From Bugula neritina (lineage: Eukaryota > Animalia > Bryozoa): a DNA stretch of 64,000 bases. The notes beneath the pieces were generated by a model. The model ran no database searches, was not told the DNA's origin, and worked only from the letters and a program-made list of their open reading frames with translations. The stretch is taken from contig OZ037765.1 in the NCBI GenBank assembly GCA_964035545.1, positions 19,654,995-19,718,994 of the forward strand, written 5' to 3'. A program made the translations under genes and the position numbers. Of the stretch, positions 16,858 to 57,300 are shown piece by piece (the stretch's first letter is position 1; each line of letters opens with the position of its first letter).

Positions 16858-19800
16858 ATGTCTATAATGAACACTGGGATATATTTCAAATGGCCAGACT
16901 ACCTGGTGTTTAGCTTGTCTCTGGTATTATCAGCAGCCATAGGATTCTACTATGCCTGTACTGGAGGGAAACAGAAGACTACTAAAGAATATCTTCTGGC
17001 TGACAGAAACATGCATTGGCTTCCTGTTGCAATCAGTCTGGCAGTGAGGTGAATGATAAAATTCACTTTGTAATTGTAACTATATGGAGTAATAATTCTA
17101 ATTTATTTTCGCTCTGTTCAGAATGCGTGCAAATTGTGTTGAAGAAACATCATGTTGCACATAACTTACTTTACTTACTTTAGTTTTCTGTTGTTTAAAA
17201 TAGTATTATAAATGAATGAAAAGTGTAAAAGAAAAACTGGATTCATTACTGCAAAACAATGAAATAATTATTATTGTATTCTTTTGTTATACAAGTCAAC
17301 CTATTGCCTCTAAGTTTGCAAATCTTATAATCAGTTATAAATACCCAAAAGAGTTTTAAGAAAATTTGTTGTCTGTGAATATTGAATGACATGTTTTTAT
17401 TTTGCAGTTTCACATCTTCTGGCATTCTAATTGGTCTTCCAGCTGAGATATACACATTTGGTACAATATACATGTTTACTTTGGTTGGCAGACCAATAGC
17501 GGCTGTCTTATCTGCTAAATTGTTTATCCCAGTGTTTAAACAAATTGGTTCTATTAGCCTGTACCAGGTAATTTCAAACAGAGTATTGTAGAAAATAATA
17601 AAAGTTGTTCATTGTGTTTAAGTTCTCTTCAAGTATTTTTCTATAACTTATAAATCATAATCCATTAAAGTGTGAGTAAACTTATTGAATTTAGAAATAT
17701 AGAAATTGTTAGTGTGTATTGTTTTAATATTTGCTACTACAAGCACTACACAACACTACTTATGTATATCATCGTAACCATTAACCTTCTCTTTAATAGC
17801 ATGACAAATTGTTTAGTTTAAACATTACACTATTGTATTTTGAAGCTATGTATAATAACTCACAATGTATTTTTTGTTATCTAGTACATCTATAAAAGAT
17901 TTGGCAGACTCTTGAGTATTATTCTGCTAGTAGAGGGATTCTTTTTATCGGTGAGTCATTTAAATATTCAAGTTTGTGTTTGCTGACTTTCAATGCAGCA
18001 AAACTAGTGACTAATCTACTCATCGTGTTTTTGATTATAAAAAGCTAATAGGAATTGTCATCCCAAAACAAAAGCTTTTAAAATTATGCATTTGCAAATT
18101 TTACTTCTGGTGTTACAACTATGATTTTCTCAAATTATTAGCACTGTTTTGTAATTTGTATGCATTATACTACATTTATATGTTCTTCAAAAAGTATGTT
18201 ATAGAATATTTTTAAGATTGTCATAGTGCGCCAAAATAACACAGCTCACAACAAAAAATTATAATTCAATTATCAATTTGAATACTGTAAACTGATGTAG
18301 AATTATTAAAAAAATCTTCAACAATTGCCTTGCCTGCTAAATATTCTTATGCTTTGAATAGGTGTCACTACTATTTCTTGAAGCTAAGTAAGCTACTTTA
18401 ATAATTTTTTTAACAGATAAATATAGCTAAGCGGAATTTTTAAAGCTTTTAGCCTGTCCTGATGACTTTAGGTACCTAACTTATTAACATAATATGAAAA
18501 CCACTTTTTACTAACAAATATTTTTTATAGGACATTTAGACAGTAATTGAATGAATATGCTTTGATTAGAAGGTGGACTACTGATTCAACTGGAAATTAC
18601 ATAAGAAAAGATTGAAACGCATAAATCTTTATAAAATATGCATATCTCTGCTTACTAGTATAAATACAAGACTTTGATTTGACTGCTGAAATTATATCAT
18701 AAGCATATTGTACAGTTAGTAGGTCGCTACTAAACTATAGCTAGAATAATTGTATGAGAAGATAATCACCATGCAAAGCATATTATATATTATTACTAGC
18801 ATATAAGAAACAGGAACTGTAAGATTCAGCAAAGCTATAACTTTCACTTTTGCAGATGCTGTTTGGAGCACTAATAATTTATGGACCAGCATTGGCTATG
18901 TCAGGAGGTGAGCTATAGTGTGGTAAAACCAATGTTTTTGAACATATGTTAGAAGTCATGGAGGTATAAACTTCATTAGCTGTGCTGTTTAACTTAAATG
19001 ATCTACAAAAATAACATGTCTAATTTCTTATAAACTACTTGCTTTTTCATTACCTACCAGTATCATTCGATGTAATAATTTGGTGGTAACACTTTTGTAT
19101 GATATTTTTCAACTCTCTTATCTTGATATATAAAACTTTAATCACCTTTTTGTAAAAATGCAGGTATTGAAATATAAGCTATGTTGTCAACATCTATACC
19201 CTATCAACAACCAGTGAAATGTTACCCTCTGCTTCCCTTATTAATAGTGCCATAGTAAGTAGGCAGCACCAATTACTTACTTACTTTGTAAGTAGTGTAG
19301 AGCTCAAGCTAGCAAACTGTCTCATGATTCAAAAATTATTAGGATGCAATGGTAGTAAGGGAGCAGCCGTGGTTTTGGGGTTAGAGCGTTTCGCTTAGTG
19401 AACACGAAGTCATGAGTTTGAAACCCGGTAAAGGCCATTGATGTTAGGAAGAGCATCCAGTCATAATTGCTCCTGTGCCACATATGAATAAGTCCTTAGT
19501 TAATAAAAGTTTTTTCCATCAGAGGTTTTCTCGCAGGGATGGCGACCATAAACTCCCGTGAGTTTTGAGTAGTAATTTTTATATTTTTAGTAACTGGTTT
19601 GAACCTCTGGGTTGCTGTATGTTCCGTAGGACTGATTGCTATGCTGTACACAGTCTTGGTAAGTAGTTTATTCTTTGGTTTTCTAAATATATTGTATGAT
19701 AATTTCAACGACATTATGTAACTAATTTTAATTTAATCATGATAATACTGAATAGTTCTTAGTATTTAACTGGTTATCATAAGGTCGATAAGAAATATAT

Positions 19801-27224: not shown

Positions 27225-30200
27225 AATATCTAATGTCCATGTTATTGATTATTACATACTATTTATGTTGTCTGAATGTCTATATATTTATACTTTATGT
27301 ATACTAATTTATTTGTCTTTCACCAATTTGCCAACTTTTAAAGGGGTTTGGGAGCATTGCGGGTAGCTGGTATAGCTGATAATTATCTTAATAATCAAAA
27401 TTGCAACTGAATAACTTATTGAAAGACATTATACTTTCTCTTTATAATGAATTATCACTGTGTGGTAAAATGTGCTATAGTTTAATTTAGATACAACGAA
27501 TACATCTCATCAGACGCATGTGTTGTTGATATACTCAAAATGAGGCCAGCAATAATACAGTAAAAAGCAAACATGAAAATACTTAAATGCCATTCAAGTT
27601 TAATTTATTTATGTTTTATATACTTTATGAAAAATGCACATCTTTTAATACTGTTATATATAATGTCATTTGCCAGCCAACTTCGAAATTAGAGTACATT
27701 TAATAATTGATATGTCCCAAATGGTGGGTATTGTGGTTTTATGCTAAACTGCAAAATAATCATATATAAAAACCTTTCCTGTTTCAACATTCAACATTAA
27801 TTTATTGTATTTTGCAAATCATGTCTTTAAATCAAATTAGTTTTCTATTTGGCAAGCTAGGAGTAAGTGAACATAACTTGCAAAGCATTATCAGAAGACT
27901 AAGTCCATTCTGATTGGCTAATCTCAACCTCAAACCTTATATTGAATAACTCATTTCTGTGGATGTCATGTTTCATTTGAAAACTGAAGCTAGAGAACAG
28001 ATTTTGATTTATCATAAATTGATAGAAAAAAGTATTTAGGAGTAATTGTACAGCTTTAACACATAACCATGTCTATGATGAACACTGGGATATATTTCAA
28101 ATGGCCAGACTACCTGGTGTTTAGCTTGTCTCTGGTATTATCAGCAGCCATAGGATTCTACTATGCCTGTACTGGAGGGAAACAGAAGACTACTAAAGAG
28201 TATCTTCTGGCTGACAGAAACATGCATTGGCTTCCTGTTGCAATCAGTCTGGCAGTGAGGTGAATGATGAAATTCACTTGGTAGTTGTAACTATGAAGTA
28301 ATAATTCTAATTTATTTTCCCTCCGTTCAGAATGCATGCAAATTTTGCTGAAGAAACATCATGTTAACGGATGTTTTGTGCATCATTTCTTTGATTTACT
28401 TTAGTTTTCTGTAGTTTAAAAGAGTATTATAAATTAATGAAAAGCATAGAAGAAAAATTGGATTTATTACTGCAAAACAATGAAATAATTATTGTTGTAT
28501 TCCATTCCGCTAAATGTTATGCAAATCAATTTATCGCCTCTAAGTTTGTAAATTTATTAATCAGTTATAAATATCCAAAAAAGTTTTGATAAAGCTTGTT
28601 GTCCATGAATATTGAATCACATGTTTTTATTTTGCAGTTTCACATCTTCTGGCATTCTAATTGGTCTTCCAGCTGAGATATACACATTTGGTACAATATA
28701 CATGTTCACTTTGGTTGGCAGACCAATAGCTGCTGTTTTATCTGCTAAACTGTTTATCCCAGTGTTTAAACAAATTGGTTCTATCAGCCTGTACCAGGTA
28801 ATTTTAACAATAATTTATTATAAGCAATAATAAATTTTTGTCATTGTGTTTAAGTTCTCTTCAAGCATTTTTCTATAACATAAAAATGATAATCCATTAA
28901 AGTGTAAGTGAACTTATTGGCTTTAGAAATATAGAAATTGTTAGTGTGTATTGTTTTAATATTTGCTACTACAAGCACTACACAACACTACTTATGTATA
29001 TCATCATAACCATTAACCTTCTCTTCAATGGCATGACAAATTGTTTAGTTTGAACATTACACTATTGTATTCTGAAGCTATGTGTAATAACTCACAATAT
29101 ATTTTTTTGTTATCTAGTATATTCATAAAAGATTTGGCAGACTCTTGAGTATTATTCTGCTAGTAGAGGGATTCTTTTTATCGGTGAGTCATTCGAATAT
29201 TCAAGTTTGTGTTTGCTCACTTTCAATGCAACAAAACTAGTTACTCACCTACTCATTGAGTTTTTGATTATAAAAAGCTAATAGGAATTATCATCACAAA
29301 GCAAAAACTGTTAAAATTATGCATTTTCAAATTTTCAAGTTTCAAATTCTACTGCTGGTGCTATAACTATGATTTTCTCAAACTAATATCTTGTTTTGTG
29401 ATTCATACTGCATTTATTTTATGTTCTTCAAAAGTATGTTATATAATTTTATTAAGGCTGTCATAGTGCACAGAAATAACACAGCTCACAAAGAAAAATT
29501 ATAAATCAATTATTGATTTGAATACTGTAAACTAATGTAAAATTAATAAAAAAAAACTTCAATAATTGCCGTGACTGTTGAATGTTCTTATACTTTGAAT
29601 AGGTGTCACAACTATTTATTAAAGCTAAGTTGGCTATTTTAATAATTTTTTTAGCAATAAATATAGTTAGGCAAGTTGTTTAAAGCTTTCAGCCTGTCCT
29701 GATGACTTTAGGTAACTCAAATCATTAATATAATATGTGCTAAAAACCACTTTTTAATAACAGATAACTTATAGGAAACTTAGACAACAGTAATTGAATG
29801 AATATGCTTTGATTAAAAAGTGGATTACTTTTTCAACTGAAAATAGATCTTTATAAATTAAGATATTTCTGTTTCCCAGCATAAATACAAGAATTTGATT
29901 TGACTGCTGAAATTATATCATAAGCATATTGTACAGTTAGTAGGTTGCTACTAAACTATGGTATAAAAAGATAATCACCATGCAAAGCATATGTATTACT
30001 AGCATATAAGAAACACCAACTGTAAGATTTAGAAAAAGCTACTTTCACTTTTGCAGATGCTGTTTGGAGCACTAATAATTTATGGACCAGCATTAGCTAT
30101 GTCAGGAGGTGAGCTATAGTGTGGTAAAACAAATGTATTTGAACATATGTCAAAAACCACGGAGGTACAAATTTTATTAGCTGTGCTGTTTAAAGTAAAT

Positions 30201-34423: not shown

Positions 34424-36648
34424 ATACTTTAAACGTTGAGATAATTCCATATTAGTCATTTATATTGCATAAATTGAAGTAAAGGGAGAGGATAACCCTT
34501 TATGAAATCTTACCAGGGAAATTGAACTCTACCTTTTTGTACAATTCACCTGCTGCAGACTACCTCTTTTCAGCATCTATTTAAGATATTCTAAAGGCAT
34601 AAATAAAGATGTTTAGATGGTAAAACTGGTTTATAGCTCCTACGCATTATTATGGTTGTGTGATATCTATAAAATTAAAAGCATACTACATAAGGTTTCA
34701 ACAACTGGTATGCTTTAAAATTGTGCAGCTCCTACTTGAATTTCATGGAAGCTAGTTGATTCAACTACAGCATTTAACTGCATTGCATTGTGGAAAAGTA
34801 TACACTATTTTAAAAACTAGTGATTAACTGTTAAATCTACTGCAAAAAGTTGACAAGAAGTAATTTAGGATCTAGGCAGTCTATAAAATTTACACTTAAT
34901 TGTCACAATAATATAATTATAGTCAGATAATTTAATGTTGTAGATTCAGCCGCTGTTTACTATGGAAATATTCCAGAACCTACCAGGTTTATCTGGTCTC
35001 CTAATGTCCTCTGTGTTTAGTGCATCTCTTAGGTGAGTTACCATCACATTAAACTGGCTGTGAACATGTGGGGACAATCTCTTGGATTTGTCTACACTTT
35101 GCACACAATCAAGTGATGTGACTTAGTCTTACAATAGTAAAACAACTAACTAGAATGTAGTTTATGTGCCATTCTCTTTATTTCGGTCTAAACATTTACA
35201 TTCTAAAATGTTTTTTCAACTTAGTTTTAGTTACATGGAGTAATGGTGGCAATGGTGGCAATGTTAATAAGCAGTTAGTTGATAGTAAATGTATTTCTAG
35301 CTATTTAAAGCCATAATATTATATTAATCTTTTTAAATGGCTTTATTTTCTTGTTGAGACTGCATCAGCAAAATTAATACTGGTTGTGCTACAGATATTT
35401 CATGCAAAATTAACAATCATCACTACAAAATAAATATTCTTTTCAGTATTTCTTTATTAAATAGGTGGTCTAGTATAGCTACCTATTCTTTACAATTATC
35501 ATATTTAACACTGGTATTAAATACATTTACTGTAACTGTAGCACAATTAGCTCTGGAATGAATGCAGGAGCTGCCATTATTCTACAAGAGGTTATCAAGC
35601 CACTGAAACCTAACATGTCTGACCGAAGAGCGGCAGTCGTTTGTAAACTACTTTCCACTCTCACTGGAATTGTCTCAATTTTATTTGTCATTTTCTTGAG
35701 GTTTTTTGGAAGTGGACTATTATCGGTAAGGCAACTAAATATATGCATGCATTCATTTTCAAATAAGCTTTTTTATTGGTAGAACATAACTTAATTAGGG
35801 ATTTAACCAAAAATTAATTTGCAAAATAGATTCGAACATAAATGTGTAAAAATCTTAAACGTAAAGTTTTCTTAAGAGTGTGTCACGTTTTGAGTTTCAA
35901 GTAAGTACAAATAATTCATAACATTTTTTTATGAAAAAAACCTTAACTTAAAAGAAAATGCATGATGTATAACTTTTCTTTTAAACATCGACTTGTCTTG
36001 ACAGTTGCCTGACACTTTTATTTAAGTTTTTTTAATTATAGCTTCTTGTGCGTAAAAGTATAATACTTTACATTTAGCACAGTGGAAGTGCGCAATCTAT
36101 AATAGAATGCTCCAAGTTATTAAAAAGTTGACAACTTTGAACAATAAAATGAGAACACTATTTTTATTTGTTCAGTTTCTGTTAAATGTATCCTGAATAA
36201 AAATTTGGGTAAAAGTAAAACACCTGAAATGTTTTAACTTGATCACCTAAATTTTTAAATATACTGGTTATATATTTTACACATTTGTGTCAACTTAGAG
36301 CATTTCAGTTAGAGCCTAAAGGAATTGCAAGCGCAAGTTGATCTATTTAGCAACTGTTTAATATAGTGTCCAAAACAGCAAATACTCTATTAATTTTAAA
36401 AGAATATTTACAGAAATCTTATCTGCTTGTTTGTAGGTAACTTTAGCATTAGTTGGTATAGCAACAGGACCATCTGTAGCTGCTTTTACTGTTGGAATCT
36501 TCTTTCCATTTGTTGATGGTAGATGTGCTGTAATTGGAAACGTTATGGCAACAGGTATGTTGACTGCAGTTTAGATAGTCAGTTCAAGCAGTATAAGGGT
36601 TTCTGGCATACATAAAACTGCTTATGCGTTTGTGCGTGTGTGTGTGCG

Positions 36649-37209
<561 letters not shown>

Positions 37210-37958
37210 ATGCCATTGTTATTTTTCATAGCCTTTGCTACCTGGTTGAGTTTTGGTGGACTAATCAACAAGCCATACGTGTATTCCTACCCTGTAACTA
37301 CAGCTGGTTGTAACATCACAGATGAGAATTTACTTGCTAATATATCATCTCCTGTATATGACCCCAGTACATGGAACCCTCAGTCTCACTACAGGTATAA
37401 TATCTATATTTTTTTTAGCTTCAACAATGGTATACATTCATATATTTGTATTATGTCTGATTATATGTTTAAATTCTATGTTACAAGTTACATATGGAAT
37501 ATATAAAACTAGAATCAACAAGGACTTGTTTCTTTTACTTTGACTTATATTAGTACTTACAGTGTAAATATTTTATTCACTCTGTCAATATATGTAGCCT
37601 TTAAAAATTATTATAATGGTTTTGTATACTAATTAGTTACTAACTGCATGTTTACTATTAGCTCACCACATTTTTAAACTGCGTGCCATTCAAGTCTAAT
37701 TTAAAATCTATAACTCAAGAACTTGTTGAATCATTTTGTATTTTATTATTTTATTATATTATTACTGCAGGTCCTCATTATTCACCTAGTTTTATTCAAC
37801 AAATATAACTATGTTAGGTTTAAAATAAAATGTTGAATAAGCTGCTTTATATCATATTAAAAAAATTTTATCTATAGACTAATTGAATAGTTAGGTGTTC
37901 CTTAACTGTCCAGGCTTTTAAAGTGTCATTTAATTGGCTATAATTTACCATACATTAA

Positions 37959-42201: not shown

Positions 42202-45200
42202 ATGTCTATGATGAACACTGGGATATATTTCAAATGGCCAGACTACCTGGTGTTTAGCTTGTCTCTGGTATTATCAGCAGCTATAGGATTCTACTATGCA
42301 TGTACTGGAGGAAAGCAGAAGACAACTAAAGAATATCTTCTGGCTGACAGAAACATGCATTGGCTTCCTGTTGCAATAAGTATGGCAGTGAGGTGAATGA
42401 TAAAATTCGCTTTGTAATAGTAACTTTGGAGTAATAATTCTAATTTATTTTTGTTGTGTCGAAGAAAAATCATATTGAGAGATGTTTTGCACATAACTTA
42501 CTTTACTTACTATAATTTTCTGTTATTTAAAATAATATTATAAATGAATGGAAGGTGTAAAAGAAAAATTGGATTTATTACTGCAAAACAATGAAATAAT
42601 TATTATTGTATTCTATTGTTATACAAGACAATCTATCGCCTCTAAGTTTGTAAATCTATTAGTCAGTTATGAATACCCAATAGAGTTTTAGGAAAATTTG
42701 TTGTCTGTGAATATTGAATCACATGTTTTTATTTTGCAGTTTCACTTCTTCTGGCCTTCTAATTGGTCTTCCAGCTGAGATATACACATTTGGTACAATA
42801 TACATGTTTACTTTGGTTGGCAGACCAATAGCGGCTGTCTTATCTGCTAAACTGTTTATCCCAGTGTTTAAACAAATTGGTTCTATCAGCCTGTACCAGG
42901 TAATTTTAACTAAAATTTATTATAAACAATAATAAAAGTTTTCATTGTCTTTAAGTTATATTCAAGTATTTTTCTCCTAATAAATAATAATCCATTCAAG
43001 TGTGTGTAAACTTATTGTCTTCAGAAATATAGAAACTGTTTGTTATTATTGCTTTTAATATTTGCTACAAACGTTGCACAACACTACTTATGTATGTCAC
43101 CATAAGTATCAACTCTCTCTTCAATGGCATGACAAATTGTTCAGTTTGAAAATTACACTATTTGTAAAATAATCGCCCCCACCGAGATTCAAACCACACA
43201 CCTCTGGCTTGCAAGCAGGCGCGCTAACCAATTACGCTACAGGGGCTTCGATATTCCAAACAACATCCCACCCAGTTTTCTCCAGAACTGCGCTGGTCCC
43301 CACGTACTCTGTCAGTTTATATGCTTGACTTGCCACTCAACTTCCTAAGAGTACTTCCACAAGACAAGGCCAAAATAGCTTGTAAAATAATTGCCCCCAC
43401 CGGGATTTGAACCACAGACCTCCAGCCTGCAAGCAGGCGCGCTAACTAAGTACGCTACAGGGGCTTCAGTATTCCAAACAACACTATTGTATTCTGAAGT
43501 TATAATAAATGATGTATATTTCTGTTATCTAGTACATCTATAAAAGATTTGGCAGACTCTTGAGTATTATTCTGCTAGTAGAGGGATTCTTTTTATCGGT
43601 GAGTCATTCGAAAATTCAAGCTTACGTTTGCTCACTTTCAATGCAGCAAAACTAGTGACTAACCTACTTATTGTATTTTTTATAATAAAAAGCTAATAGA
43701 AATTATCATCACAAAGCAAAAGTTTTTTAAAATTATTCAAATTCTACTGCTGGCGTTAAAACTATGATTTTCTCCAATTAATAATGTGTTTTGTGATTTG
43801 CATGCATTATACTGCATTTAAATATGTTCTTCAAAAAATATGTTATAGAGTTTTATTAAGATTGTCATAGTGCACAAAAATAACACAGCTCACAAAGAAC
43901 AATTATAATTTAATTATTGATTTGAATACTGTTCTTATTAAAAAAAAACTTCCACAATTGCCTTTACTGTTAAATTTTCTTATGCTTTGAATAGGTGTCA
44001 CTACTATTTCTTAAAGCTAAGTTAGCTACTTTATTAATTTTTTTTAACAGATAAATATAGCTAGGCAGAATGTTTAAAGCGTTCAGCCTTTCCTGATGAC
44101 TTTAGGTAACTTAACTAACTTATTAATATTATATAAAAACCACTTCCTATCAACAAATATTTTATAAGACATTTAGACAGTAATTGAATGAATATGCTTT
44201 GATTAAAAGGTGGACTACTGATTCAACTGGAAATTACATAAGAAAAGATTGAAACGCATAAGTTTTTATAAAATATGCATATCTCTGCTTCCTAGTATAA
44301 ATACAAGATTTTGATTTGACTGCTCAAATTATATCATAAGCATGTATTGTACAGTAAGCCTAGGGCCACGCTGTGCGTATTTTCGCATGCAAAAATTGAA
44401 ACCACGAGTAGCAAAGGTGTCCACTGTATGCGTTGAGAAAACATTCGCACTTGTCGCTCAGCATTCTGAACGCAAATGCGAATCGTCTCTGTCGTCGTCA
44501 CCTAATTGGCTGGTAGTTATTTAGCGAGCCCAATTCTTTCATTTTAGTGCTATATTCCAGTAAATTGCGTTTTATTAAAAGCGAGTGGGATTTAAAAATG
44601 AAAGCTTTATTTATCCTGCATTACTGACGCTACAGTGGACACCTTTGCTACCTGTGGTTTCAATTTTCGCATGCGAAAATACGCACAGTGTGGCCCTAGG
44701 CTTAGTAGATTGCTACTCAACTATAACTAGAATAATTGTATGAGAGGATAATCACCATGCAAAGCATATGTATTACTGGCAACAACGTGTGGCATATAAG
44801 AAACAGGAACTGTAAGATTCAGCAAAACTACTTTCACTTTTGCAGATGCTGTTTGGAGCACTAATAATTTATGGACCAGCATTGGCTATGTCAGGAGGTG
44901 AGCTATAGTGTGGTAAAACAAATGTCTTTGAGCATGTGTCAAAAACCACGGAGGTACAAATTTTATTAGCTGTGCTGTTTAAAGTAAATTATCTACAAAA
45001 TCAGTTGTCTAATTTCTTGTAAACAACTTGCTCTTTTATTACCTATCAGTATCATTTGATGTATTAATTTGATGGTAAAACTTCTGTATGATGTTTTTTT
45101 CAAATCTAGCTTTTATCTTGATATATAAAACTTTAATCACCTTTTCGTAATGATGCAAGTATTGAAATATAAGCTATGTTGTCAACTCAAGAATTAGTAA

Positions 45201-48200
45201 GAGAGCAGCCATGGTCTTGGGGCTAGAGCATTTCGCTTAGTAAACATGAAGTCATGGGTTCAGAGCCCAGTAAAGGCCATTGGTGATAGTAAGAAGAGCA
45301 TCCAGTCATAATTGCTCCTGTGCCATATATAAATAAGTCCTCAGCTCGATTTAATAAAAACCCTTTCTGTCAGAGGTTTTCTCTACAGGGATGGCGACCA
45401 TAAACTTCCGTGAGTTTTGAGTAGCAATTTTTATATTTTTTAGTAACTGGCTTAAATCTCTGGGTTGTTGTATGTTCCGTAGGACTGATTGCAATGCTGT
45501 ACACAGTCTTGGTAAGGAGTATTCTATGGTTTTCTAGACATACTTTATGATAATTCCAACAACATTATGTAACTAATTTTAATTTAATCATGGTAATGCT
45601 TAATAGTTCTTAAAAGTTAACTGGTTGCCAAAAGATCTATAAAAAATATATTGCTTTGTGAAACATCTTCAAGTAAAAATCTCTTGATTTTCAGTTTATG
45701 AAATAATGATGGATCTACATGCATGAGTGGTTCTTTAAAAAAAGGTTTTTTTATAGAAAATGTTTTTTTCAACTGTGTAACTGGTTGGCCTCAGTAGATA
45801 AGGCTGTCACTTTTAATTATTAGAGTCCTTATTATGAAATTCTGTAGTAAAGCTGATAAAGCTTATAACCTACTTTTGGCACAGAGGACAATGACCTGAA
45901 AAACTATGTGATAACATAACCACAAATAAGATTTAAATTTAGTATAAAAAGCTATTACAAAACTAACTAAAGTACTATTATAAGTATATTAAATAACTTC
46001 AATAATAACAAGCATAGACAAAAATGTAATTTTTAGTGCAACAATGATAATTGTCATGAACTGTTGAAGAGATGCTATATCGTTATCACAAAAGCATGTG
46101 TGTTATCAAAGTTACAATATAGTGATTATTACTTGCATGTGATGGCACAAAAAATATGTACATTAGTTTGAAAATGAAAAACCGTGAAATGCAGCAGAAA
46201 GTAACGATCAATATTGTAAATTAAGCGCTTTTAGTTACAACTGAAACTTTTATGCTTGTGTAAGCTTATATTATAAGAAGTGTTAGAAATCAAGTTTCGC
46301 TTTCAACTGTAATAATACAGTTAAAATCAAAATTATGCTAAACGAATTGTTGCTAAAAATACATCATTTGCATATGGGTCATTTTACTTAATTTAGTAAA
46401 AACTTGATATCTCTAGTTTTTAGTTATTTTTCACAATGTAGCTGCTATTGTATATGGGTTTTTGCTCTAAATTGATAAAAAATATTAACAAATACAACTG
46501 AATAAGTAAGGCTCTTTTTAATTTGGCTTAATTTTCTATGTTTCTTTGTAATCTACTAGTGAATTGGGATTTTCATACCATAATGGAGAAAACCATCACA
46601 GTCCACACATATCTATTTAGGTCATGTGACAACGGCATTGCACTTTGATGTTCCAGCACTCTCTTCCAGCCTTTGTTCACTATGCATAGTTAGAATCAGA
46701 ACATAACATTACCTCATTTAGTAAATTTTCATAAATCTTGAGCCAACTTTAAGTTTGGTCCTAAATTGCTGATGCTTACTAAAAACGAGTAAAGTGGCCT
46801 ATATTATATTAACTGGCTAAAAATATAATATTATTATTAAACACACTCATCTATGTACCACATTTTATGCTACTTTTATTTTCTTGCTTTTCCATCTTTT
46901 CTCACAGGGTGGTTTGAAGGCTGTTCTCTGGACAGACACTCTCCAGTTTCTCATCATGATAGTTGGATGTATAGTACTACTTATATTTGGAACAGTTAAA
47001 GCTGGTGGACCCAGTGAAGTTTGGAGAGTAAACAAGCTCAGTGGTAGACTGGATATACTGGAGTAAGTTAGAACATATTAACATCTACATCGGTAAGGTA
47101 TATATAGCTCACTTTTCTTATTTGGTTGCTAATACATAATTAAAATAGTTTACCATTATTATATTACCTAATGCATCTAAGAGTTATTATTTACTTCATG
47201 TAAAACTTTTGCGTCCACTGGGATTCGAATTCTCAAACTCAAACCTCAAATTTGCAAGCAGGCACACTAACCTTTACACCACAGGGGCTACTGGGTAAAC
47301 TCACCATTACTTGTCAGACTTTGATTTCATTGCGTTTGATTGTATTGTAGCTTTGTAATCAATTTTTTAAAAGTTCACTTTTTTGGAAAAAATTAAACAT
47401 GTACCAATACATTATAATGCAAAAGCAAACACTGTTTTTAAAAAACATGAACATTTATTAGTTAGTTTTTCAGCAATGCTAGTACTTTTGTTTTATTTTT
47501 AAATATTACAAGCTTGATAAAACATTAGTATATAGTATTTTAATATTTTTCAACTTTCTATTTCAAGGCCAACTAAATTTTTGAGTTTTGATCCTCGGAG
47601 TCGTCACACCTTATGGACTCAAGTCTGTAATGCTATATTGATCTACATCAGTGCTTATGGAGCCTCACCAGTTGCTATTCAGCGCATTTTGGCATTGAAG
47701 CCTGGACCTATTAATACTTTTTTGTAAGTATTTTGATATAAAAATATAATGTTTAGACATAGTAAAATAAATTAATAGTCTCCTTTAACATTATGCAGCC
47801 GTGGTTTAGGGGTTAAAGCGTTTGCCTAGTAAACACGAGGTCATAGGTTCGAGCCCTGACAACGGCCATTGGTGATGTTAGGAAGAGCATCCAGTCATAA
47901 TTGCTTCTGTGCCTCATTTAAATAAGTCCTTGGCGAGCTTTAACAAAAACCCTTTCTATCAGGGGTTTTCTCACAGAGATAGCGACTATAAACTTGCCTG
48001 GGTTTTTTAACATTATGCGTAATAAAATTATCTATAGATTTTCGATATAATATATGCAGCTCATGTAGTTTATTATATATAGTGGGATAATGTTTTGGAT
48101 TGAGAAATGCTTAATTTTAGTTTTATTATTGAAAGAATTTAAACTTTTGCAATTATACAAAAGTTTAAATAAATAAGTCCTAAATGATTGACTAATATCT

Positions 48201-54383: not shown

Positions 54384-57300
54384 ATGTCTATGATGAACAC
54401 TGGGATATATTTCAAATGGCCAGACTACCTGGTATTCAGCTTGTCTCTGGTATTATCAGCAGCCATAGGATTCTACTATGCCTGTACTGGAGGGAAGCAG
54501 AAGACAACTAAAGAATATCTTCTGGCTGACAGGAACATGCATTGGCTTCCTGTTGCAATCAGTCTGGCAGTGAGGTGAATGATGAAATTCACTTGGTAGT
54601 TGTAACTATGAAGTAATAATTCTAATTTATTTTCCTTCCGTTCAGAATGCATGCAAATTTTGCTGAAGAAACATCATGTTAACGAATGTTTTGTGCATCA
54701 TTTCTTTGATTTACTTTAGTTTTTTGTAGTTCAAAAGAGTATTATAAATTAATGAAAAGCATAGAAGAAAAATTGGATTTATTACTGCAAAACAATGAAA
54801 TAATTATTGTTGTATTCCATTCCGCTAAATGTTATGCAAATCAATTTATCGCCTCTAAGTTTGTAAATTTATTAATCAGTTATAAATACCCAAAAAAGTT
54901 TTGATAAAGCTTGTTGTTCATGAATCTTGAATCACATGTTTTTATTTTGCAGTTTCACTTCTTCTGGCATTCTAATTGGTTTTCCAGCTGAGATATACAC
55001 ATTTGGTACAATATACATGTTTACTTTGGTTGGCAGACCAATAGCGGCTGTCTTATCAGCTAAACTGTTTATCCCAGTGTTTAAACAAATTGGTTCTATC
55101 AGCCTGTACCAGGTAATTCCAAATATAATGTATTATAAACAAAGATAAAAGTTGTTCATTGCGTTTAAGTTCTCTTCAAGTGTTTTTCTATAACTTATAA
55201 ATCATAATCCATTAAAGTGTGAGTAAACTTATTGAATTTAGAAATATAGAAATTGTTAGTGTGTATTGTTTTAATATTTGCTACTACAAGCACTACACAA
55301 CACTACTTATGTATATCATCGTAACCATTAACCTTCTCTTTAATAGCATGACAAATTGTTTAGTTTGAACATTACACTATTGTATTCTGAAGCTATGTAT
55401 AATAACTCACAATGTATTTTTTGTTATCTAGTACATCTATAAAAGATTTGGCAGACTCTTGAGTATTATTCTGCTAGTAGAGGGATTCTTTTTATCGGTG
55501 AGTCATTTAAATATTCAAGTTTGTGTTTGCTGACTTTCAATGCAGCAAAACTAGTGACTAATCTACTCATCGTGTTTTTGATTATAAAAAGCTAATAGGA
55601 ATTGTCATCCCAAAACAAAAGCTTTTAAAATTATGCATTTGCAAATTTTACTTCTGGTGTTACAACTATGATTTTCTCAAATTATTAGCACTGTTTTGTA
55701 ATTTGTATGCATTATACTACATTTATATGTTCTTCAAAAAGTATGTTATAGAATATTTTTAAGATTGTCATAGTGCGCCAAAATAACACAGCTCACAACA
55801 AAAAATTATAATTCAATTATCAATTTGAATACTGTAAACTGATGTAGAATTATTAAAAAAATCTTCAACAATTGCCTTGCCTGCTAAATATTCTTATGCT
55901 TTGAATAGGTGTCACTACTATTTCTTGAAGCTAAGTAAGCTACTTTAATAATTTTTTTAACAGATAAATATAGCTAGGCGGAATTTTTAAAGCTTTTAGC
56001 CTGTCCTGATGACTTTAGGTAACTAACTTATTAACATAATATGAAAACCACTTTTTACTAACAAATATTTTTTATAGGACATTTAGACAGTAATTGAATG
56101 AATATGCTTTGATTAGAAGGTGGACTACTGATTCAACTGGAAATTACATAAGAAAAGATTGAAACGCATAAATCTTTATAAAATATGCATATCTCTGCTT
56201 CCAAGTATAAATACAAGATTTTAATTTGACTGCTCAAATTGTATCATAAGCATATTGTACAGTTAGTAGGTTGCTACTCAACTATAGCTAGAATAATAGT
56301 ATGAGAAGATAATCACCATGCAAAGCATATTATATATTGTTACTAGCATATAAAAAACACCAACTGTAAGATTCAGAAAAAGCTACTTTCACTTTTGCAG
56401 ATGCTGTTTGGAGCACTAATAATTTATGGACCAGCATTGGCTATGTCAGGAGGTGAGCTGTAGTGTGGTAAAACAAATGTTTTTGAACATATGTCAAAAG
56501 TCATGGAGGTATAAACTTCATTAGTTGTGCTGTTTAACTTAAATGATTTACAAAAATAACATGTCTAATTTCTTATAAACTACTTGCTTTTTCATTACCT
56601 ACCAGTATCATTTGATGTAATAATTTGATGGTAAAACTTTTGTATGATGTTTTTCAACTCTCTTATCTTGATATATAAAACTTTAATCACCTTTTTGTAA
56701 TAATGCAGGTATTGAAATATAAGCTATGTTGTCAACAACTATACCCTATCAACACCCAGTGAAATGTTAACTCCTGCTTCACTGTTTAATAGTGCCATAG
56801 TAAGTAGGCAGCACCAATTACTTACTTACCTTGTAAGTAGTGTAGAGCTCAAGCAAACCATTTCATGATTCAAAAAATATTAGGATGCAACAGTAATGAG
56901 GGAGCATGCAGCCATGGTTTGGGGTTAGAGCGTTTCGCTTAGTGAACACGAAGTCATGAGTTTGAAACCCGGTAAAGGCCATTGGTGATGTTAAGAAGAG
57001 CATCCAGTCATAATTGCTCTTGTGCCACATATGAATAAGTCCTTAGTTAATAAAAGTTTTTTCCATCAGAGGTTTTCTCGCAGGGATGGCGACCATAAAC
57101 TCCCGTGAGTTTTGAGTAGTAATTTTTATATTTTTAGTAACTGGTTTGAACCTCTGGGTTGCTGTATGTTCCGTAGGACTGATTGCTATGCTGTACACAG
57201 TCTTGGTAAGTAGTTTATTCTTTGGTTTTCTAAATATATTGTATGATAATTTCAACGACATTATGTAACTAATTTTAATTTAATCATGATAATACTGAAT

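Follow-up and report, generated by a model that had tools for sequence, protein, structure and literature searches.

The 321-bp element at positions 43163-43483 of the window (the 64,000-nt stretch of DNA that was analysed, to which window positions refer) is, together with the whole mechanism proposed for it, very probably a TRIM of the Helenus type, that is, a non-coding, non-autonomous LTR retrotransposon. Judged from its sequence, the bryozoan family to which it belongs has the defining features of Helenus and differs in the length of its target-site duplication (TSD), its primer type, its partner and its host. In the proposed mechanism, the template RNA would start within the 5' LTR, at its tRNA-like module, which would act as an internal Pol III promoter, read through the weak T4 run of that LTR and end at the T4 run of the 3' LTR. 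Such a transcript would define a U3 of about 19 nt, an R of about 80 nt and a U5 of about 3 nt. The primer would be a 5' fragment of tRNA-Phe ending at nucleotide 12, and the gag and pol (protease, reverse transcriptase, RNase H, and integrase) of autonomous elements would copy and integrate the TRIM in trans.

Structure and age of the window copy

A repeat search of the window returned two direct repeats, spaced 218 bp apart and 88% identical. Exact delimitation confirmed what an earlier, sequence-only reading had described: an LTR-core-LTR arrangement of 321 bp on the minus strand, with 103-bp TG...CA repeats identical at 91 of 103 positions and a core of 115 bp. In element orientation, the 5' LTR lies at 43381-43483 and the 3' LTR at 43163-43265; both have TGT...ACA ends, and each is composed of a 19-nt leader, a degenerate tRNA-like module of 73 nt, and ATTATTTTACA. 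The non-coding core (43266-43380, minus strand) opens with a primer-binding site that adjoins the 5' LTR (43369-43380) and reads AGCTATTTTGGC here but AGCTATTTCGGC in most copies. It closes with a G-rich polypurine tract (43266-43283) adjoining the 3' LTR, where ...CTGGGTGGGA stands beside TGT, as it also does in a sister subfamily, B.

The tRNA-like units, again on the minus strand, occupy 43392-43464 in the 5' LTR and 43174-43246 in the 3' LTR. By motif position, the A and B boxes fall at 43446-43457 and 43403-43413 in the former and at 43228-43239 and 43185-43195 in the latter, with a decayed CpG in both B boxes. A T4 run (43166-43169), a candidate Pol III terminator, is separated from the end of the 3' LTR by 3 nt. 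The A box, the B box, the T4 run, the purine tract, and a string TGGCCTTGTCTTGTGGA were all found where the sequence-only reading had placed them. The same holds for the CTATT duplication that it reported: CTATT flanks the element at 43158-43162 and 43484-43488, and three paralogues (17780-17897, 29005-29130, and 55327-55444) each run through a single CTATT without the insert.

The 12 differences between the two LTRs comprise 10 transitions and 2 transversions. Several of them fall at decayed CpGs, and in some cases the same CpG has decayed on opposite strands in the two LTRs, which points to an old copy in methylated DNA. To judge from these differences, the window copy is old and inactive.

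Four paralogous stretches of about 85% identity are found 11-14 kb apart in the window (17526-18140, 28756-29388, 42858-43790, and 55071-55687), and this spacing indicates that the window contains a tandemly duplicated unit; only one of the four carries the TRIM. Elsewhere in the window, a 59-bp piece of a tRNA-like LTR of subfamily B (80% identity) lies on the minus strand at 47252-47310. The stretch 36579-37506 has ORFs of 190-290 aa in several frames on both strands, a strong GC skew (0.24) and no Pfam match, and is probably a compositionally biased repeat. For ORF 440-1006 of the window, all matches were of low complexity.

The family in the genome

A scan of the 216-Mb genome reduced 714 first-look candidates to 46 scored matches. 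At least 12 of the copies are full members of a subfamily A, 296-333 bp long, and every one has the LTR-core-LTR layout, which upholds the claim of a TRIM family of the LTR type whose LTRs each carry a tRNA-like module of the Pol III type. Six of these copies have perfect 5-bp TSDs (AATAG, ATTTA, TAATA, TTAAT, ACTCA, and CTTAC), and most of the remaining ones match at four of five positions when the ends are set as TGT...ACA. Subfamily B differs in its leader, which is 22 nt long, while its tRNA-like body is related; the LTR end, the primer site, and the purine tract are common to A and B. Its TSDs are again of 5 bp, perfect in six of nine cases and matching at four of five positions in the other three. 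The length of the TSD is thus constant in both subfamilies. The base that follows ACA is A, T, C or G among copies and repeats the upstream flank each time, as expected for the canonical ends with a 5-bp TSD that the sequence-only reading had preferred. The 4-bp TSD with TG...AA ends that it had kept as a second option is ruled out by the copies in which T, C or G follows ACA.

The two LTRs of subfamily A copies are 79-97% identical to each other, which makes this subfamily an old one with no young copies. The LTR copies of subfamily B are 92-98% identical to a reference B LTR, and B is younger than A. Pattern counts in the genome, made with up to three mismatches and with a reversed-pattern control of zero, gave 92 matches for the LTR 5' end, 21 for the internal region, and 177 for the junction of LTR and primer site. 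By these counts, tRNA-bearing repeats outnumber cores by about 4:1, and with 92 LTR 5' ends to 21 cores many LTRs are probably solo; a tandem arrangement is possible for L002/L016. The copy counting that had been suggested at the outset thus gave full elements and an LTR surplus, with solo LTRs probable.

On one contig (G000 C8:9468378-9500714), six LTR matches of subfamily A lie on one strand within 32 kb, and some copies accordingly spread by segmental duplication, not by transposition. A hairpin beside another TRIM copy (L002, 2258-2395) matched several miRNA families far below their gathering thresholds (best 51.5 vs 110 bits) and is probably an unrelated inverted repeat. Five small contigs of the assembly (C87, C95, C291, C58, and C31 of G000) match HSP70 over its full length, with numerous TAA and TAG codons in frame and no TGA; their source seems to be an organism with a ciliate-type genetic code rather than the host.

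One insertion can be followed outside this genome. The flank of the copy at locus L007 contains a nuclear-receptor zinc-finger exon, a mark of animal DNA, and the best match to this exon (96% identical) comes from a contig in JGI sample 3300003318. Over 3.3 kb the orthologous loci align at 87.5%, and they hold an orthologous TRIM insertion with the TSD GCAAC in both. The family probably predates the split from the animal of that sample, to go by this shared insertion. One scan of metagenome contigs for the junction of LTR and primer site found none.

tRNA-like units and proposed transcription

The tRNA-like units of the two window LTRs match the Rfam tRNA model end to end on the minus strand, with 39.8 bits for the 5' LTR and 25 bits (model positions 1-71) for the 3' LTR (gathering threshold 29), in keeping with the tRNA-like unit that had been read in each LTR. 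Better-preserved LTRs of subfamilies A and B reach 35-47 bits over the full model, and most LTR copies in the alignment retain an intact B box, GGTTCGAATCC. The only Rfam matches in the region of the element are to tRNA, and none is to a 5S-derived module. ARAGORN called no tRNA at either window unit, and the anticodon arm of both units is degenerate; the tRNA-like units are hence at most promoters.

Several features of the LTRs fit a Pol III transcript running from the tRNA-like unit to the second T4 run. Only about 19 nt of LTR lie upstream of the tRNA-like unit. Subfamilies A and B retain the A box, the B box, and the T4-ACA end despite their different leaders. In the less decayed copies, the sense strand has just two T4 runs, each 3 nt before an LTR end. 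A different reading accepts the same TRIM and ascribes its template to Pol II or to read-through transcription that begins in a host gene; the tRNA-like module would then be left over from a SINE or tRNA that inserted into an LTR long ago, and would no longer drive transcription. The T4 run of the 5' LTR, which precedes the primer site and would halt much of Pol III transcription, speaks for this reading, as does the statement by Kojima (2024; PMC10886601) that the promoters of Helenus are unvalidated. It has to accommodate the short upstream segment, in which a Pol II promoter would hardly fit, the retention of boxes and T4-ACA end beside divergent leaders, and the lack of any further sense-strand T4 in the less decayed copies. 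This alternative is unlikely overall, with an appreciable weight nonetheless, and transcription by Pol III is the reading preferred here.

The primer site

In the aligned copies, the core opens with AGCTATTTCGGC immediately after ...TTTTACA. This 12-nt sequence is the exact reverse complement, at 12 of 12 positions, of nucleotides 1-12 of the host tRNA-Phe(GAA), of which five genes start with GCCGAAATAGCT; it does not match the tRNA-Phe 3' end, and the match ends exactly at tRNA nucleotide 1. It takes the same position in TRIM subfamilies A and B and in two autonomous families, whose LTRs are unrelated. In the window copy, the site has TTTTGG as a result of CpG decay. The candidate primer-binding site of the sequence-only reading, TGGCCTTGTCTTGTGGA, did not survive the comparison of copies. 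It is present in the window copy, but its TGG is a CpG-decay product of the CGG found in most copies, no tRNA 3' end fits it in the comparison that had been suggested, and the conserved 12 nt adjoin the LTR instead.

From this complementarity, reverse transcription appears to be primed from the first 12 bases of tRNA-Phe. It is conceivable that the 12-nt site is no tRNA-Phe primer site, that the element primes itself as Tf1 does or uses another RNA, and that the match to tRNA-Phe reflects packaging or coincidence. A primer ending at nucleotide 12 requires a cleavage without documentation: a literature search found no precedent for such a primer and no paper describing one, and searches on tRNA-fragment priming and on tRNA-Phe primer sites yielded nothing relevant. 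Moreover, on visual inspection the 5' end of the TRIM-A tRNA-like unit pairs with the site at 8 of 12 positions. The corresponding end in subfamily B has almost no pairing with the site, however, and self-priming by this part of the TRIM was rejected; nor was a complement of the site seen in the LTR of an autonomous element, L043, on visual inspection. These observations, the perfect match that stops exactly at nucleotide 1 of the mature tRNA, and the identical position of the site in four families or subfamilies make the alternative rather improbable, and a tRNA-Phe 5' fragment stays the favoured primer.

In copia and Ty5, priming is by an internal fragment of the initiator methionine tRNA, and Tf1 is self-priming. 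The bryozoan TRIM resembles these elements in that its primer would not be the 3' CCA end of a tRNA and that a cleaved RNA would supply the 3' OH. It differs from copia and Ty5 in pairing with nucleotides 1-12 of tRNA-Phe, which would imply a cut in the D arm, and from Tf1 in that the 5' end of its own transcript has no complement of the site. In another assembly, a relative of the autonomous element with 57% identity (L053) has a 5-bp TSD and carries AGCTATCCCGGC right after its LTR, at 2196-2208; this resembles the complement of the 5' end of another tRNA.

Autonomous partners

A search for further LTR ends followed by these 12 nt led to two autonomous families with intact elements. Three copies of the first (L043, L045, and L047) are 4307 bp long with 271-bp LTRs that are identical within each copy, and the second (L044) measures 5152 bp with 445-bp LTRs. 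All four elements have TGT...ACA ends, perfect 5-bp TSDs, the 12-nt site adjoining the LTR, and a G-rich tract ahead of the 3' LTR. Their gag has a zinc knuckle, and the domains of their pol follow the order PR-RT-DUF7047-RNase H-IN, with Pfam matches to RVT_1, DUF7047, RVT_3/RNase_H, and rve. A look-up of the partner gag for exact matches gave none.

This domain order excludes Copia as the class of the partner, and the domain search of the partner pol found neither Peptidase_A17, the signature of BEL, nor RT_RNaseH, the usual signature of Gypsy. The sequence-only reading had pointed to an autonomous Gypsy, BEL or Copia partner with the same termini, primer site, and purine tract: the shared termini, 12-nt site, TSD length, and G-rich tract were found, whereas Copia was eliminated and neither the BEL signature nor the usual Gypsy one appeared. 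Among solved integrases, those closest to that of the partner are retroviral. The partner has 749 homologues at E <= 1e-10, the best of which is just 57% identical, and among the best 120 of the 749 the sole informatively named one comes from the bryozoan Watersipora. A literature search on DUF7047 found nothing relevant.

Hybrid elements

Two loci, L041 and L042, combine an autonomous-type 5' LTR with a core of subfamily B and a tRNA-like B 3' LTR, within one perfect TSD (ATATG). The whole locus is present twice, about 170 kb apart on contig C5, and the two represent a single event that was later duplicated. The hybrid (L041, 1566-5009; L042, 1584-9254) contains a nested insertion with TGT...ACA ends. 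It is the sole hybrid with an autonomous LTR, and involves the sister subfamily B and not A. Two further loci, L008 and L018, have a B 5' LTR followed by an A core and an A 3' LTR, with perfect TSDs.

Normal reverse transcription gives two like LTRs. Unlike LTRs in one integration would arise most simply if plus-strand strong-stop DNA made on one template moved, at the primer site that both have in common, onto the minus strand of another template packaged with it. The hybrid at L041/L042 suggests that the TRIM and the autonomous element were reverse-transcribed together. If transfer of this kind did take place, TRIM and autonomous RNAs would be copied in the same particle. The full scheme, in which a 12-nt tRNA-Phe 5' fragment primes both the TRIM and its partners, Pol III reads through a weak terminator, and elements with unlike LTRs arise by plus-strand strong-stop transfers between co-packaged RNAs at the shared site, is put forward tentatively, as one that may quite possibly be correct.

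Mosaics are also seen within LTRs. Three of them (L031, 689-796; L023, 1705-1809; and L011, 2991-3092) have a B leader and a tRNA body resembling that of A. The change from one to the other coincides with the 5' end of the tRNA-like unit; a U3/R boundary at this point would predict such a position, and shared ancestry could give the same pattern. A mixed tandem array at L012 (1459-2019) runs from a B LTR through an A core, an A LTR and a B core to a B LTR.

Relation to known elements

TRIMs with tRNA-derived LTRs have been described as Helenus (TRIMp3) from fungi, one plant, and six animal phyla, among which Bryozoa are absent (Kojima 2024; PMC10886601). The earlier remark that such elements are rare in animals was thus overstated. 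The comparison with described elements that the sequence-only reading called for assigns the bryozoan family to the Helenus type and finds no 5S module of the Cassandra or Ajax kind. Like Helenus, the family has two LTRs around a short non-coding core, TG...CA ends and a TSD, and in each LTR a tRNA-derived sequence with A and B boxes, matching the whole Rfam model at 25-47 bits. It also has a primer site after the 5' LTR, although one of an unusual kind that corresponds to a tRNA 5' end, and a polypurine tract before the 3' LTR. Probably solo LTRs in surplus, possible tandem elements, and several co-existing subfamilies are further points of likeness, as are a tRNA-like part that is not a functional tRNA and a length of 321 bp, within the published range of 311-1263 bp (PMC10886601).

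There are also differences. According to the text of the same paper, animal Helenus elements have a 4-bp TSD, primers from tRNA 3' ends, and Gypsy-like partners (PMC10886601). In the part of its Table S1 consulted, the animal families have a 4-bp TSD wherever this was determined, with two entries not determined (PMC10886601). By contrast, the TSD is of 5 bp in subfamilies A and B and in the partners of the bryozoan family, its primer site pairs with a tRNA 5' end rather than with a 3' end or an anticodon loop, the partner pol is without the usual Gypsy RT_RNaseH signatures, and the host phylum is Bryozoa. The 103-bp LTR falls below the minimum of 104 in the same part of Table S1. Four motifs of the bryozoan family were absent from the sequence file of Kojima (2024; PMC10886601).

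Cassandra, a plant TRIM with 5S rRNA in its LTRs, and the nemertean Ajax, also with 5S, share with the bryozoan TRIM the internal Pol III promoter of a small-RNA gene in each LTR; their module is 5S and their primers are tRNA 3' ends, whereas the bryozoan module is tRNA-derived. Kojima proposed a SINE head as a possible ancestral source of the LTR module (PMC10886601), and tRNA-derived SINEs (SINE2) do have a similar tRNA-like head with A and B boxes, but in them the head is single, the tail is of the LINE type, and the TSD varies. That the element is itself a dimeric tRNA-derived SINE, or two adjacent SINE or tRNA-pseudogene copies moved by a LINE, deserves almost no credence: a T run behind the A and B boxes would suit it, but the variable TSDs and tails that the sequence-only reading had named as the mark of a SINE are absent from the copies. 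These end uniformly in TGT...ACA, have TSDs of a constant 5 bp, lack any A-rich or LINE-derived tail, and carry a primer site and a purine tract between the repeats; the layout is identical in all full copies, and tRNA-bearing repeats are about four times commoner than cores.

Significance

The family extends the recently defined class of TRIMs with Pol III promoters to another animal phylum, and it breaks the published rule for animal Helenus of a 4-bp TSD and dependence on Gypsy. The shared unusual primer site and the one hybrid between an autonomous LTR and subfamily B provide evidence at the sequence level for the partner of a TRIM. For annotation, tRNA-like units of this kind are liable to be miscalled as tRNA genes or SINEs. 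Finally, the primer site hints that a tRNA 5' fragment may be used in a way perhaps not described before, and a genome in which partners retain open reading frames would allow this to be tested.
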